Made by a program: the position numbers and the translations under genes. From positions 1,973,267 through 2,037,266 of the forward strand of contig RDEW01000005.1 in NCBI GenBank assembly GCA_011109175.1: a stretch of DNA of 64,000 nucleotides, written 5' to 3'. Positions 38,055-48,559 of this stretch are shown piece after piece. Every line of letters begins with the position of its first letter. Within the stretch, counting starts at the first letter, position 1. The notes under the pieces were generated by a model. That model was given only the letters and a program-made list of their open reading frames with translations. It did no database searches and was not told where the DNA came from. The DNA is from Dicyema japonicum (lineage: Eukaryota > Animalia > Dicyemida).

Positions 38055-39212
38055 ATGGATAAGTGTGATTCTTCGAAAATGGAAATATCTCCTCAGAAAG
38101 CCAAAGAAATGTTCGAAAAAGATGGGATTGTTCTATTGCTTGATCCTCCTGTGGGGACGGAAATTGGAATTAACTGTAAGTCATGGCATACCACTGACAA
38201 ATTTATGGGATTCAAAATGATACCTCAAGGAATTCATTTTGTTTACTACAAGTTTGACTAATTATCCCATTTTCTAGCATTTCCAATAAATACCACGAAA
38301 ATTCTACCAGGAAAGGGTTTTTTGTCAACATTACAGGTCGTACAGTCATTATAAAAAGGTGGGACTCAACAGAAGAAAGTTTTGCTTTATTATTTTACTA
38401 TAAAGATTTTCTTGACTATTCTGACCATCAGTTCTTTCAGGATATGCAGAAATATGACTCTAGGCTTGCCTGCTATCCATTCGACCAGTTGAATTGAGTT
38501 TTTTACCGATAGACATCGAAAATGGGTTTCTCTCACAAATTATATCGGCTTGGATATTATAGATCGGATTCAGCCATCTGGAAAAACTATTTTTTCGTCC
38601 CCACAGCTTTTTTGCCCCTCGAGTAACACAGAAGATAGAAAAGATAACATTGTAACGTCGTCTGAATTAGATTCTACTCGAATGAGATACTCAAAAATAT
38701 CCCGAAAGGATTATATGGCTGGTCTTATAGCCAATAATAACTTTTCTTCCGTCACAAACTCCGCTCTCGATCGAACTAACGAATTCCTCTCTATTTGGCC
38801 ATCCGAAGAAGGCTTGAAAGGACAAGAGATTGTCGGCGAATTACAACTGTGTTTTGCTGTTTTCCTTTGTGGGCTCAATTACGCATCATTTGAGCATTGG
38901 AAAGATATGGTTGAACTTTTATGCGGCTGTGAAGATCTGATTGAACATTATGAGAGACTTTTTAGTCAGTTTCTTAGTGCGTTGTATTTTGAGGTGAAGG
39001 AAATTCTCGAGGATTTGTATGTTGACATAATACGGGAAGAAAATTTCATTTATATGAGTATCAGGAGACTGGTCGGTAATATCATGGGTTCAAATTATCC
39101 TGAACTTATCAAGAAAGTGACTGAACTGAAGGTTTTCTGTTCTCACACTTTTTCGTGGGATTTTGATGAGATTGACGATGAAGATTTGCCCATAATTGTT
39201 AATATTGATTGA
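38055..39212 (+). CDS. AAR2: AAR2 splicing factor homolog (U5 snRNP assembly)
   Basis: PVGTEIGIN, FMGFKMIPQGIHFVYY, GELQLCFAVFLCGLNYASFEHWK and FSWDF motifs; introns 38252-38276, 38379-38405 and 38488-38512. Confidence 0.92.
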
Positions 39213-41100: not shown

Positions 41101-41599
41101 TTATGATACTGCTCCACATGATTTATAGCGGATTTTTTCTAATAATTTCAGCCATCCCTTTTCACGAATGTCTCTTTTCCTTGTGGCTATTAGGAATCCA
41201 TTTTCCTGTAAATTAGTTGTGATTTAACAGTCAGTTTTCGGCATAGTTATGAAAAGCTGATTGCTTATGATCCGTGATATTTTTTGGATTCAAAAATCCT
41301 AAAATATTAATTATCTGAATGTTAATAAAACTATTTGTACTTTCTAAAAGAAATCAAAGTTTAGATCAAAGCATCGTGAAATTTAGCCTTTGCTTTCAAT
41401 CACATTGAGTAACTGAAAACCTATTTAAGAAAAGATTCATCAGTTCATTTGGACGAGAAGAGAAGAGATACTGAACAGAATCGGATTTATAAGACGATTT
41501 GAAGAGAATTGGACTAATGACTTTGTCGCTATGTTCTTTCTGCCTTCAAGAATTTATTAGATGGGGAACTTGAATTAAGTAAGTCTGTTATTTCCAATG

Positions 41600-42525
41600 A
41601 TAGTTCGTTTTTGACAGTTTCTGAGTTTTCACTAAGGCGAGAGTAGTGCTATCGAGTCCAAACAGGAAGCACTGATCTTGAGTAATCAAGAAATTAATTT
41701 AGCAACATTTTGGGCGGTGGAATAGAAAGCATGTCAATCACTGAGTTTTTTGGCGAAATTAGATGCGGAAAAACCGAGCTCGCCCACACTTTATGTGGTA
41801 GCTGTCCAATCAGTAAATATTAGTGAGTTCCCAAATAAGTCAGTCAATTGGCCGACTAAATGGCTGGAAAGTTATGTACATTGACACAGAAACACATTTT
41901 TGTCAAAATAATCAATTTAAGTCGTCCTGCCATGCTGCACACAATAGCTGCCAGATTTAAGGTCAATTTAGACGAGCAGTTTTTCCCCTTTTTAACGATA
42001 GGCGAGCATCAGATGGAGATTATGAACCACATGGCTGCGAAATTCTACGAGGAGTCTGGAATTTTTAAACTTTTGGTAGAATTATTATCTATGTCATATT
42101 GTAAACTCGATTATGGCTTTATTCCGTGTGGACTACTCTGGGAGAGGAGAACTTGCTGATAGGCAACAGAAATAGGGCAATTCTTATCCCGTTTGCAAAA
42201 GATATCAGATGTTGTTGTGAGTTACATTAGAGTACGACGTTGCTGTGATGATAACAAATCAAATGACCTCAGATTCGGGGCAGGAATAAGGTTTTAATGA
42301 GTGAGATATAACACTAGTTTTTAAGCGGACCCTAAGAAACCAATTGGAGGGCACGTTTTAGCTCATGCAAGCACAACTCGCGTCTCTCTAAGGAAAGGGA
42401 TAGCTGAGAATAGAATAACAAAAATTTTTGATAGGTACGTAATGTGATCTACTATTAGTCTTGAATTTAGAGAAAACGAGGCCACGTTCTCTATTACAGA
42501 CGGTGAAATCTATGACGCTAAGGAC
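41600..42525 (+). pseudogene. DMC1: Meiotic recombinase DMC1 pseudogene (introns retained, 5' part not recognisable)
   Basis: [43 protein letters not shown] and [25 protein letters not shown] are DMC1-type rather than RAD51. In-frame TAG 41644 and TAA 42322, several 1-nt deletions, and an internal deletion. Confidence 0.9.
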
Positions 42526-42686
42526 TTTATTAAGTTTATTAGTTTATCTTTGAACCTGGTTATTAGTTGTTGAAAAGCAAATTCAAAGCCTTTTCTTTCA
42601 GTCCAATTATTTAATATGTCACCTGTCAATCAATCTGTCACCTGTCGTTCAATGAATATTAATTGATTTCTAATCAATTAAATTAT

Positions 42687-43671
42687 GCAAGCTTCCTACA
42701 CGCCTCGGAGGAACGGGTCTCAGGTCGGCGCTGGAGATCGCCTATCCAGCATATATGTCATCGCTCTCAAGTGGAAGCCTTTTGGTCCAAGAAATCCTAC
42801 GTATTACAACCGGACTCTTTTGGGAAAAAGTCTTCGACGAAGCTCGTTGCGAATGGTGTGAAACTGGTTTGGATATGCCGAACGATCCTTCGAGGCAACG
42901 TGACTGGGATGATATTTACTCCAAGAATATCTTCGACGTGCTAAAGTCTGAGGCCAACCAGCATCGTCTTGCATGCCTGGTGTCCGCCGCCAACCATGGG
43001 AGCGGAGCGTGGCTGGATGCACTCCCGTGTTCCTCCCTGGGGACCCTATTGGACGATGACTGTATTCGGATTGGAATCGCACAACGCCTGGGAGCTGATG
43101 TCTGCGTCGAACACCAATGTCGCTGTGGAGGGATCGTCGATGCCAAAGGGCTGCACCCGCTCTCGTGCAAAAGGAGCGCGGGCAGATCACCCCGCCATGC
43201 TGCTATGAACAACATTGTCTTGCGAGCTCTTGAAGCGGCAGGCTTCCCGGCAGTACTGGAACCTGTGGGATTGGACCGCGGAGATGGGAAAAGACCGGAT
43301 GGGCTAACTATCTTTCCGTTCACTGAGGGAAAATCGCTCGTATGGGACTGCACTGTTGTGGATTCTTTCTCGAACTCGATGATTCTCAGCTCGGCGTAGT
43401 CTGCTGGATCGGCAGCCGATCTGGCCGAGAAAATCAAGATTAAAAAATATGGCGAAATTGGAGACCGTTACCGTTTTGTACCGGTAGCAATCGAGACGTC
43501 TGGTGCGGCTGGAAGTATTACAGCTTCTTTCCTAAAGGAAATCGGGGGAAAATTGGCCCATCGCAAGAAAGACGTGCGGGAAGCGGTCTGGCTATGGAAA
43601 GAATTGGTATCGCAGTTGTTCGCGGAAACGCTTACTCCGTGATGTCAGCAGCCGCTCTTCCTCATAGTTAA
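42687..43671 (+). mobile_element. CRE-like non-LTR retrotransposon, 5'-truncated, lightly degraded
   Basis: GAWLDALP, RIGIAQRLG, C-x-C...HPLSC, RHAAMN, KRPDG, LVWDCTVVDS, FVPVAIETSG and VVRGN motifs; one stop at 43397 and a late frameshift. Confidence 0.92.
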
Positions 43672-43909
43672 TAAATAATATTTTATTGTTAATAAATTTA
43701 AAAAAAATAAAATAATTTATTTATTTTTTTTATTTTTTTAAACAATTTTTATTTTATTTTTTTAAACAATCGAATAATTTATTTTTTAAGTCTATCGTAT
43801 TTTGATTGATGAACGTTCTATTTTTGTTCATTCACGTAAAATAGGCTAAATTTAAATTTGGTAAAAAAATCAGATCAAAATGATCTGCATCAAAGTTTTC
43901 TAGCATAAT

Positions 43910-45600
43910 TTATACAATAATTACCTGAAACATCTGAAATATGTTCCACGTCAATAGGAAAAAGATCATCCGAACCCTAACTTTCTTTGAAATTAAAAAT
44001 AATAATAAATTTTTATACTCACGAATGACTGTGTTTATTCCAGAAACTCTTCTCAGTTTTATAAATGGAGTTTCATTTGTGGAGGAACGAAGCACTTTTA
44101 CGGATAACACCACGATTCTATTTCTATGGATAGACTTCGCCAAGGTTCGCATTGCAGACTCGTTATCCATGCAAACAACTAATCTGTGCTTTTCAAATTT
44201 TTCGTCTTTGATAAATGATTCGAATAAGATTTTCGATAGTTCCACCAACCTTCCACATTTTTTCTCCCAACCATAAGGGAATTGGCATATGAGGATTATC
44301 CCTTTAGCAAACTTTAGAGCAAAATTACGCGTTTTCTCAAATGTCTTGAGAATTGAGTCTCTTTTTTGAGTCGTACCATCCTTCTATACCGTATGACATT
44401 GCAGGAAATAGTTGAAGACATGAAGAAAGGTCTCCGACTCGAGCTTTAGTTTTCTGACACAAAACAGAACGTTCGTAGCTTTTTTCTTTCGTATTTTAGC
44501 ATGTTCCAGAAAATTAGCAACCTTGGAGCCAAGGTATTTCATAGTTTTCTTCCGAGGTATTTCTTGTAACGATTTCTTTAGGCTAGCCATCCTCCTGCTA
44601 CCATTTATCCTCACCAGACCAGACTTCTCATGTGCAACTGAAAGAAAGATTTCATTACACCACTCATCGATCTGGTTCATGTATATCTTCAACCGTTTCT
44701 CAGATACCAAAGGATTTGAAAAGACATCATAAATTATGACGTCATCAGCGTATATCAAGATTTTTGTAAGTTGGTTTTCTGGCAAGGCAATTCACACATT
44801 ACAATGTTGAATAATAGAGGACTGAGCACTGAACCCTGAAAGACACCTCTTCTGAGCCAGATTTCACGAGACTCATAATTACAAAAATAACAATTGACCG
44901 TCTATCCGAGAGCAAACTTCGTATCCAAAAATAAAGTTTTTTTTTCAACACCACATTTCGCAAGACAAATAAAAAGTCCAAGATGCCACACAGTGTCGAA
45001 AGCTTTGGATATATCAAGGCAGACTGCGGTCAAACATCCTTTAGTTTCCAAAGCCTTCACAATTGACGTTAACACTGTACAACCAATCTCCACATGAGCA
45101 ATTTTTTTGTAAACCCCACTGATGCTCTATTAATAGATCATTACGTTCTATGTGTTCAGAGACTCTGTTAAATATCATTCTTTCCACAATTCTTGAGATT
45201 GTTGTTATAAGGCTTATGGGTCTATAACTGGTTGTTAAGTACCCAGGTTTCTCAGATTTACGTATCAGCCTGACCTCCGTCAATTTCCAACGCGAAGGTA
45301 TACGACCCAACTCCATACTGCAAGTATAAAGACATCAAAGAAATTCATATAGNGTTAAATATCATTCTTTCCATAATTCTTGAGATTATTGTTATAAGGC
45401 TTATGGGTCTATAACTGGTTGTTAAGTACCAAGGTTTCTCAGATTTACGTATCAGCCTGACCTCCGTCAATTTCCAATGCGAAGGTATACGACCCAACTC
45501 CATACTGCAAGTATAAAGACATCAAAGAAATTCATATAGTGTCTGAGATGCTTCCTTGAATAAACGCATAACGATCTAGTCCTTTCCAGGAGTATTGTCT
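43910..45600 (-). mobile_element. I/Jockey-group LINE remnant with RT and probable RNase H
   Basis: YRPISL, LDISKAFDTVWH, QGSVLSPLLF, IYADD and KYLG motifs; downstream VCMDNESAM...IKLRRVSG resembles RNase H; many frameshifts. Confidence 0.8.
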
Positions 45601-45904
45601 TCAGTGCATTTTACCGCATTTTCAACTCCTGCATTTTCTGTGACGTAGTGGTAAAGAACTATGCTGTGTGAATCAAGTGTCTGCAGTATATATAAGCAGG
45701 AACTGCGTTCTCGAGCAATTTTTCAATAAAAATGAAAGATACAAATTCAAGCAAGAGAGAATATGTTATTCCTGTTAACTGAAAAGACTGGATGGACTTG
45801 TGCAACATTGAAGATCTCCGCGTTTGTGACCGTGAGAGTTGGCTACATTTATATATAACAGCCCTGCCGCCAAGGAGTAGTAATGTTTCCACTAATAAAC
45901 CCCA

Positions 45905-46060
45905 GCTTAGGCAGAACTCCGACCTTATTTAAAAAGTAAGAACAGTAATGCTAATTAATCCAAGGCATAGAAAATGTCATTGACTTTTCGTTTGCGTGTG
46001 AGTCCCAGAAGACAATCTAGTTCCGCAGGGATGAAACACGGGGTCACTCGTCAACCCGCA
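45905..46060 (-). mobile_element. SINE family A, partial and diverged copy
   Basis: Tail and core blocks (gacaatctagttccgcag...gtcactcgtca) match the other copies. Confidence 0.6.
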
Positions 46061-46194
46061 GTAGTTGTTAATTATTGACTAATTTCTGTATTCTGGGTTA
46101 ATAAATTAATCGATGTCCACTTATGAACTTGTTGGAACCACATATAAACCTGTAAGAAATGAATCTTATAGCTATTTATGAACATCATGGATAA

Positions 46195-46609
46195 ATGCAA
46201 ATCATACTGAAAGAGGTTTCCCCACTAGAGAAGGAAGTGATAAACTTAGTGATTGAAAGAAATAATAATGTTATATACAGAGAACAAAATCGAAATTCAG
46301 TACAATTACTGAATTAGTCTCAGAAAGCTCAAAGAAGGGATTATGTTGATCAGAAAGTCAATTATTAACAGTAACGTAAATGGGACATGTTGTGGCACGT
46401 GTGGTTGGACTTTTGATCCTAAATCAATGATGTACTGCTCCAAGTGTGATATTCTAATTTGCATAAAATGCTTTCATGGTATTTCCAAACCAGAAAAATC
46501 CAGAATATGCCGATGGTGCTACAATTTAATGTATCCGACTAATAGCCATATTCAGGGAGTTCAAGAAGGTCTACCAGTGGCACCACCAGTTCAAAAGTGT
46601 CTCTCTTAG
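46195..46609 (+). CDS. Slp/rabphilin/melanophilin-type Rab-binding domain with FYVE-like zinc finger (5' exons)
   Basis: LKEVSPLEKEVINLVIER helix, then CGTC...CSKC...CIKC...CRWC. An 18-nt intron near 46290 needs -1 A to keep frame. Downstream exons unresolved. Confidence 0.5.
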
Positions 46610-48559
46610 GCAGCTATACTTTGGTATCAATATCTTACTTCAGTCGACGATAACCTGGTCAGCATCAATGGAAACACGGAAAGGGACAAAATCACAGAGT
46701 CATCGTTAAATACATTTTAGGGAAGAGATTTTGGAAAAATTCGCTGACAAACATCTAAAGAATACTGAAAAGGAAAAGAAAGAGGAAAAGGTCGAAGTAA
46801 TAGAAGAGGACGACATTCAAATTCCAAATACGTCTAATCGAATCGATGGGGGATTTGGCTTAAGGCTGCTATATACTATTCAGAAAATCTGATCGGAGTT
46901 CAAAATATTTTCGAATCATTCGCGGATGATGGATATCTAGTTCGAACAGCTAAAGAAAGTCTCAAAAACCACGTGTTAGTTAGCAGTCTATGTGACCTTA
47001 TCCGAAGATATTTGAACATTCCAGGTTTCCGAATAATGTAGCTATTGCAGATATTACGAAATTTAAAAGTACACGTTTCACAGCTGAACAAGTATATGAT
47101 AGTTTAAAATCGTTGGAATTTGGAAAATCAAATTTATTAAAAAATACATAAATAAAAGGTTTCAAAAAAAATAATTTTTCAAACATAATGAAAATGAATA
47201 ATTCACATATATCTCTTGCCGACTATTAATTACTCCAGAATTGTCAGACTACTTCGTGCTCGATTGAATGATGTTTCTCGGAGATCAAGAATTTTCTAAA
47301 ATCCAACAGACATTTTCTACCATGAAATTTAGAAAATTATGTAATTTGTATGTGTAACAAAAAGTTTCAGTGTTTTTATTGTTTAGCTATAAAGTTAAAT
47401 TTTTGGGTTAATTTTTTTAGTTTTTAGGTTAATAAAGTTAATTTTTTCACAAAAACGCCAGATCAATCGATTTAAAACTAAATCTTGCAAATGTCGATAA
47501 TACAGACGATTAAACTAACTTTAAAACATATAAACCTAAAATGATCAACAGTTGGTGTGAGAAGAGGCTCTGTGGATTCATTCGTGTCCCTACCATTCCT
47601 TCTCCAAGATAAAGTGATGAAACTGTGAGTTTGTTCCAAAATTTCCTTCATTCCACTTTTTAACTCAGAATATTACAAGTTGACGTTAACAAGATCTTTT
47701 ATTATAACTTGGACGTATTTCTGTATCTCTGAAAGCAACGAAACCACAAGTTTCAGCAAATCTTTTTGTTTTGGANCGGAGATCAAGAATTTTCTAAAAT
47801 CCGACAGACATTTTCTACCATGAAATTTAGAAAATTATGTAATTTGTATGTGTAACAAAAAGTTTCAGTGTTTTTATTGTTTAGCTATAAAGTTAAATTT
47901 TTGGGTTAATTTTTTTAGTTTTTAGGTTAATAAAGTTAATTTTTTCACAAAAACGCCAGATCAATCGATTTAAAACTAAATCTTGCAAATGTCGATAATA
48001 CAGACGATTAAACTAACTTTAAAACATATAAACCTAAAATGATCAACAGTTGGTGTGAGAAGAGGCTCTGTGGATTCATTCGTGTCCCTACCATTCCTTC
48101 TCCAAGATAAAGTGATGAAACTGTGAGTTTGTTCCAAAATTTCCTTCATTCCGCTTTTTAACTCAGAATATTACAAGTTGACGTTAACAAGATCCTTTAT
48201 TATAACTTGGACGTATTTCTGTATTTCTGAAAGCAACGAAACCACAAGTTTCAGCAAAACTCTTTGCTTTGGAAGAGAAGAGCCATCAAAGTAATCGTTG
48301 ACTTGTGCATCTTCTTCCGAAGCACAATTTTTGTTATAAACTGAAAAATTGACGAAAAATGATTTATTTTCTGTTCGATTTAATCCCAGCGTTTGATTTT
48401 TTTGAAGTGATGATTATAGGAAGCCACATCTCTGAATTGTGCGACTCCCATGTCCTCTAGTTCAGCTGTACAGTAAAAATTGCTTCTTGTTGAATGTAAA
48501 ATCTACAGAGTCATTTCTTTACTCCTGAGATACTCATTAGACAACTTAGTGACTTTTTT

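Follow-up and report, generated by a model that had tools for sequence, protein, structure and literature searches.

Metazoan DMC1 is represented among solved structures by the human protein (PDB 1V5W, 2ZJB, 7C98 and 4HYY), and its GGGIES, Walker A and Walker B strand motifs recur in the DMC1 copies of Dicyema japonicum, a parasite of octopuses, in which the intron position between KLL and IVDS is conserved as well. Drosophila, Caenorhabditis and Neurospora are lineages without DMC1; they have lost HOP2 and MND1 too and are not known to keep a constrained DMC1. Dicyema resembles them in being a sexual organism with a broken-looking DMC1 sequence, but differs from them in that it keeps HOP2, MND1 and SPO11 together with one DMC1 copy under purifying selection. 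The broken-looking sequence itself, at positions 41244-42681 of the window, is an ordinary unprocessed (intron-retaining) DMC1 pseudogene. With other unprocessed, segmental-duplication pseudogenes it shares its retained introns and flanks, a parent elsewhere in the genome, a 5' truncation, lesions in common with a daughter copy and an omega of about 1, and it is peculiar among them only in its introns of 20-27 nt and in a second round of duplication.

The window, by which we mean the whole stretch of 64,000 nt that was analysed, corresponds to C323:1973267-2037266 of an assembly of 67,542,437 bases in 377 pieces with a GC content of about 37%. Three-frame translation of positions 41400-42700 revealed DMC1 exons 3-11 with GT...AG introns of 21-27 nt at 41599-42528, and the RAD51/DMC1 peptides obtained include KVMYIDT.NTF, EHQMEIMNHMAAKFYEESGIFKLL, YDVAVMITNQMTSD and ENEATFSITDGEIYDAKD. 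In a six-frame search of the whole genome the locus scored 142.7 bits (E 2.6e-40) against the DMC1 model TIGR02238 as compared to 54 and 53 bits against the RAD51 model TIGR02239, the DMC1 model was superior for every exon tested when the exons were scored one by one, and human DMC1 sequences were the best solved relatives of the exons in a PDB search. As a sequence match the assignment to DMC1 is far above chance, and these scores bear out the DMC1-diagnostic peptides with mini-introns of which a preliminary description of this DNA had spoken. The genome-wide search for DMC1 and RAD51 that it had proposed was run and gave three DMC1 loci and one intact RAD51. Besides the window copy, DMC1-type loci are located at C367:788,012-789,305 (minus strand; the parent copy) and at C224:118,094-119,400; no more were found in the assembly by HMM or DNA search, and a DNA search with the C367 locus gave no match beyond these three. 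The RAD51 gene at C90:996,995-998,200 (292 bits with the RAD51 and 217 bits with the DMC1 model) is intact when read by hand, with an ATG, six GT-AG introns of 21-26 nt, a stop and no frameshift, and two distant RAD51-family paralogues are located on C367 (62.9 kb and 494.5 kb). The parts of the window copy and of its surroundings are as follows.

41244-41333, forward strand: 5' flank, homologous to parent C367:789,754-789,843 (blastn, 88% identity)
41556-41598, forward strand: deletion junction 41584/41587, then the last 12 nt of intron 2 (alignment to parent)
41599-41681, forward strand: exon 3 remnant, TAG at 41644-46
41703-41797, forward strand: exon 4, GGGIES... and Walker A GEIRCGKT (DMC1 50.0 vs RAD51 40.9 bits)
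41824-41898, forward strand: exon 5, 1-nt deletion in TENTF (41890/41891)
41922-41978, forward strand: exon 6 remnant, 36-nt deletion after 41976
42002-42075, forward strand: exon 7 (EHQMEIMNHMAAKFYEESGIFKLL)
42076-42097, forward strand: 22-nt GT...cAT segment at the KLL/IVDS intron position
42098-42208, forward strand: exon 8, Walker B IVNS
42231-42290, forward strand: exon 9 (ITNQMTSD)
42318-42434, forward strand: exon 10, TAA at 42322-24
42459-42528, forward strand: exon 11, stop lost
42529-42681, forward strand: 3' flank, parent homology to 42616 and C224 homology to 42681
42682-43767, forward strand: repeat insertion of about 1.09 kb
43768-46838, no strand assigned: remaining block duplicated between window and C224, 94-96% identity

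Compared to human DMC1 the window copy has no HhH domain and no start or stop codon. Its frame is shifted three times and interrupted by two or three in-frame stops, 12 codons are deleted and the Asp of Walker B is changed to Asn. The TAG at 41644-46 is CAG in the parent and is common to the C224 copy; the TAA at 42322-24 takes the place of the CAA that encodes the Gln of FQADP in the parent and is restricted to the window copy, where exon 10 also shows R>I and A>T changes. Single nucleotides are deleted from TENTF, between 41890 and 41891 (common to C224), from QQKL in exon 8, where the shift gives a TAG at 42173-75 and the length change is common to C224, and from DPG at about 42277, where the window copy alone has G4 versus G5 in the parent. 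This last deletion could be an assembly error, as it lies in a G run and is found in the window only. The 36 nt missing after 41976 (VLDNVLYTRVYT; 12 codons) are also absent from C224, and a 3-nt deletion near 42206 is common to both copies. The window copy keeps Walker A (GEIRCGKT), but the Asp of Walker B is replaced by Asn (IVNS, AAC at 42104-06), C367 and C224 having IVDS. Relative to C367 the copy lacks about 457 bp, which in the parent hold exons 1-2 with the HhH domain as well as the start region, and upstream of exon 3 of the window copy neither an HhH-like frame nor a start codon was found. At the other end the stop codon TAG has become TTT (42526-28; common to C224). Finally, splice signals are altered in the intron-5 donor (GT to TT at 41899; common to C224) and, in the window copy, in the intron-8 donor, which reads AT at 42209, and in the intron-2 acceptor (AG to AT at 41597-98). 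An uninterrupted DMC1 reading frame with start and stop is absent, and the window copy is presumably without function. The TAG and TAA, the three 1-nt deletions, the loss of about 12 codons, the Walker B change and the missing N-terminal HhH exons had all been listed in the preliminary description, and each of them was confirmed at the positions given here, the last as a deletion relative to C367.

The three DMC1 copies can be aligned through exons, introns and flanks and are therefore duplicates that arose at the DNA level and not retrocopies; the retained introns and flanks rule out a retrocopy origin of the window copy. Window and C367 copies share 87% identity across 1,078 nt, eight introns and the 3' flank among them. 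Window and C224 copies are 91-96% identical, and their homology continues to window position 46838, interrupted by the 1.09-kb insertion at 42682-43767, which is absent from C224 at that place. The two have in common the TAG, the TENTF and QQKL deletions, the 36-nt and 3-nt deletions, the TT donor and the TTT in place of the stop, and the 5' deletion junction (window 41584/41587) too. These common lesions indicate that a single copy was dead and 5'-truncated before it was duplicated once more. The window alone has the TAA, the Walker B change, the DPG deletion and several substitutions, and C224 alone has further stops and an internal duplicate of 131 bp. The latter repeats the exon 9-10 region of the C224 copy within its exon 6 and ends at a single N; the C224 copy itself begins immediately behind an N gap of 5.2 kb, and the 131-bp duplicate may be a gap-closing artefact. 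With its introns kept, its 5' end truncated, its neutral evolution (see below) and most of its lesions common to C224, the window copy is the decayed duplicate that the preliminary description had considered as one of two readings.

Taken together, we consider it quite probable that the window holds a dead unprocessed duplicate of DMC1, that the C367 copy is the working gene and that the indels in the assembled C367 sequence are consensus errors. The comparison of the copies shows that a segment of DNA with the DMC1 locus now at C367:788,0-789,8 kb was copied into a repeat-rich region, and that the copied segment lost about 457 bp in which both HhH exons and the start region lay. The copy gained the TAG, two frameshifts, the 36-nt deletion and the broken donor and lost its stop codon, before a second duplication of a block of at least 4.4 kb of repeat-rich DNA gave rise to the window and C224 copies. 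Both have drifted neutrally since, the window copy adding the TAA, the Walker B change and other changes. The product of the C367 gene, like DMC1 elsewhere, would carry out ATP-dependent strand exchange at SPO11 breaks together with HOP2-MND1.

The insertion at 42682-43767 has related copies at C224:110.1 kb and 112.6 kb and contains an ORF of 214 amino acids (42755-43399) with a Cys/His-rich C-terminal part. The ORF has no Pfam match; it resembles the 3' end of a LINE. Reverse-transcriptase fragments are located at 44384-45316 on the minus strand, within the block duplicated between window and C224.

Could the window and C224 copies be one locus seen twice, either as uncollapsed haplotypes or through a second dicyemid lineage in the pool of animals? 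The D. japonicum draft genome (67.5 Mb in 377 scaffolds, GC 36.7%, with very short introns) was obtained by merging Platanus (Illumina) and Falcon (PacBio RS II) assemblies, followed by long-read scaffolding, gap closing and HaploMerger (PMC6736024). The DNA came from pooled animals and heterozygosity was reported as 1.24% (PMC6736024). Such a history, together with 94-96% homology over at least 4.4 kb (window 41461-46838), the start of the C224 block at the 5.2-kb N gap and the end of the 131-bp duplicate at a single N, is what one locus assembled twice might leave behind. However, the copies diverge by 4-9% and so exceed the reported heterozygosity several-fold, the homology stops at window 46838 and C224:122,466 inside sequence that is contiguous on both sides, and the 1.09-kb insertion in the window is absent from C224. 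We therefore regard a single locus as unlikely and retain the second duplication as the preferred explanation.

The selection acting on the three copies was examined by codon counts over 231 aligned codons of exons 3-11. Database searches were run exon by exon, and a joined version of C367, in which X stands for each missing base, served for the codon counts and for alignment to DMC1 fragments of other animals. The tip branches of window and C224 carry 6 synonymous and 22 non-synonymous changes (omega 1.01), and both copies evolve neutrally. In contrast, C367 differs from the state common to window and C224 by 19 synonymous and 12 non-synonymous changes, which gives an omega of 0.17 for the C367 branch plus the stem (Fisher p 0.003). 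Nine of these 12 differences can be polarised with DMC1 fragments P0001-P0016 as outgroups (A/V, Q/stop, Q/E, G/W, D/N, V/M, N/D, A/T and G/E), and at all nine C367 has the ancestral residue and the window/C224 lineage the derived state (p 5e-5). From the divergence of non-coding positions, about two thirds of the path from C367 to the common state of window and C224 lie on the C367 branch, for which about 32 non-synonymous changes would be expected under neutrality and 0 to 3 are seen. Taken together, purifying selection has acted on the C367 copy during practically the whole period since the duplication. The copies also provide a yardstick of the neutral rate in this genome, with about 6% and about 13% divergence for the two duplication steps.

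The C367 copy consists of 11 exons and has nine GT-AG introns of 20-26 nt, a stop, the CAG, FQADP and IVDS and the twelve codons missing from the window, and its HhH, Walker A and Walker B motifs are conserved; one of its introns ends in AT and not in AG. When X is put in for each missing base, the copy encodes a DMC1 of 324 residues that aligns end to end with the fragments of other animals and with human DMC1. Exon 1 (..ESSVNNEEI) is in frame with exon 2 over a 25-nt GT-AG intron, and the only ATG nearby is one base out of the exon-1 frame. As assembled, the frame cannot be translated, as it contains five 1-nt indels, all of them in short homopolymers: A7 (+A) in exon 2, T2 for T3, T3 for T2, G5 for G4 and C2 for C3. 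Three of these sites can be compared with the other copies, which there have the state that keeps the frame. Introns were considered as the cause of the frame switches and rejected, since no GT-AG interval fits without loss of conserved residues and stop codons occur where the frame is shifted. When the 157-aa open frame of C367 exons 6-8 was used as query, a word search found no Dicyema protein and recovered only DMC1 fragments of other animals, which covered about 30% of the query and did not exceed 76% identity; a PDB search with a very short piece of DMC1 (f1) gave no match.

Why then would a gene under purifying selection be untranslatable in the assembly? We believe that the five indels are best read as consensus errors of the merged Platanus and Falcon assembly, because breaks of this kind interrupt NAT10, UPF1 and MND1 as well. 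NAT10, which lies 8.5 kb from the C367 DMC1 gene (C367:777,400-780,400, minus strand), has three 1-nt breaks within about 300 bp (KD/TQPVG, GRGK/SAALG and FIGL/EEIGY) and none in its other approximately 2 kb, and in an alignment to Kre33 the frames abut. Such clustering points to patches of uncorrected long-read consensus. UPF1 has T2 for T3 between YRMHPA and LSxFPSN (C223:924,380-924,400), and the two frames that result align with residues 369-418 and 416-437 of 2xzo_A, abutting at 416-418. MND1 has a 1-nt break in an A6 run at VESEKI/GTSIYFW (C113:128,330-128,345). MND1, RAD51 and NAT10 were traced by eye beside human sequences, and PDB alignments served as a check for UPF1, NAT10 and DMC1. 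At five indels per kb the C367 DMC1 gene has about six times the mean of the four control genes, a density to be set beside the three per 300 bp that NAT10 reaches locally. A second copy of NAT10 that would excuse its frameshifts was looked for and rejected: the only other PF05127 match, on C223, is UPF1, and NAT10 is single-copy. Likewise, the frame change at the end of the NAT10 TmcA_N domain is no frameshift, being a normal 23-nt GT-AG intron. A PDB search with the 23-aa piece of NAT10 gave no match. The presence of 1-nt frameshifts in essential genes as well makes them unusable for calling gene loss in the Dicyema assembly.

Single Ns are found in the window at 2944, 7686, 15176, 24335, 29913, 30309, 31440, 36839, 40851, 45353, 47776, 55801, 57246, 60298 and 60582, that is about one per 4 kb, and the 30 kb around the C367 DMC1 gene contain no N. 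The spacing of Ns may mark a different assembly provenance, from an Illumina scaffold for the window and from a long-read contig for C367.

The alternative to assembly errors in C367 is that all three DMC1 copies are broken, that the loss is very recent and that meiosis proceeds on RAD51 alone. It would make Dicyema a case of DMC1 loss caught in the act, in a parasite that fertilises itself and whose body plan is extremely reduced, with a loss too recent to have left amino-acid changes and with RAD51, HOP2, MND1 and SPO11 still kept. No other DMC1 locus is present in the assembly, and C367 as assembled carries five frameshifts, runs into stops where the frame is shifted and lacks an ATG in frame; moreover, MND1, a cofactor of DMC1, is frameshifted too, as co-loss would also predict. 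Against this stand the lack of a derived amino-acid change in C367 at any of the nine polarisable sites, when about 32 neutral changes would be expected, and the occurrence of the same 1-nt breaks in the essential NAT10 and UPF1. In addition, the 4-5 indels of C367, with no amino-acid change beside them, do not fit neutral decay as seen in the window lineage, where 22 amino-acid changes accompany 5 indels (Fisher p 0.004). The retention of HOP2, MND1 and SPO11 likewise speaks against a loss, which we thus hold to be improbable, even more so than the single locus discussed above. The recent unitary loss that the preliminary description had offered as its second reading is not supported, given that C367 keeps its exons and ancestral residues under purifying selection and that the cofactors are present. 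D. japonicum has most likely not lost DMC1. The apparent loss dissolves once the parent copy and the signature of selection are examined, and the value of the case is mostly cautionary.

HOP2 was found at C310:307.3 kb (PF07106, 63.3 bits), MND1 at C113:128.3 kb (PF03962, 47.7 bits) and SPO11 with 35 bits, all above the Pfam cut-offs. A co-loss of HOP2 and MND1, suggested earlier as a check, was looked for and is contradicted by these matches. The core kit of meiotic recombination (SPO11, DMC1, RAD51, HOP2 and MND1) is thus present in a dicyemid. A literature search found no paper that combines dicyemids and DMC1, and meiosis is not mentioned in the genome paper (PMC6736024). Weaker matches to the HOP2/TBPIP winged helix at C268:649,729-649,907 (32+24 bits) and C57:842,998-843,150 (24 bits) may be paralogues or relics.

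That the lesions of the window copy are sequencing errors in an intact gene can be dismissed with near certainty. It is true that this assembly demonstrably contains many 1-nt indel errors and that the window-private DPG deletion lies in a G run. However, homopolymer errors do not account for the substitutions (TAG, TAA, D>N and the loss of the stop), for the deletions of 36 nt and 457 bp or for two of the 1-nt deletions, as had been argued earlier for the nonsense substitutions and the deletion. Most of these lesions recur in C224, which was assembled independently, and the omega of about 1 likewise speaks against an intact gene.

One feature that had been counted among the lesions has to be taken off the list. 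The 'cat' in place of a cag acceptor is indeed seen at window 42095-97, but the AT end is found in all three DMC1 copies including the constrained parent, and it is therefore not a lesion of the window copy. The corresponding segment of C367 has 24 nt, keeps the frame without a stop and encodes VRIIKLCH (positions 1573-1596 of the reverse complement of C367:786,521-790,042), whereas its counterpart of 22 nt in the window breaks the frame. If it stays unspliced, the parent protein would differ from human DMC1 by these eight extra residues. The KLL/IVDS intron position is conserved, and a DMC1 fragment from another animal (P0007) has an unspliced intron exactly there. NAT10, on the minus strand, provides a second such case, a 24-nt in-frame GT...AT segment between CVLQ and DFEA (VLFLYYFY) at a place where its homologues are contiguous. 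The GT...AT segments of DMC1 and NAT10 represent either introns with a non-AG 3' splice site or introns turned into coding sequence; the DMC1 locus would add another micro-intron without an AG 3' end, inside a constrained gene.

Two further observations concern neighbouring and related genes. A homologue of the spliceosome assembly factor AAR2 is located at 38055-39212 of the window, the ORF at 38550-39212 matching PF05282 with an E of 1.7e-32. The RAD51 gene on C90 contains a GT-AG intron of 21 nt that is in frame and free of stops (1908-1928 of the reverse complement of the extracted locus); if retained, it would insert seven residues (LGLWLTR) just before the Walker B strand.
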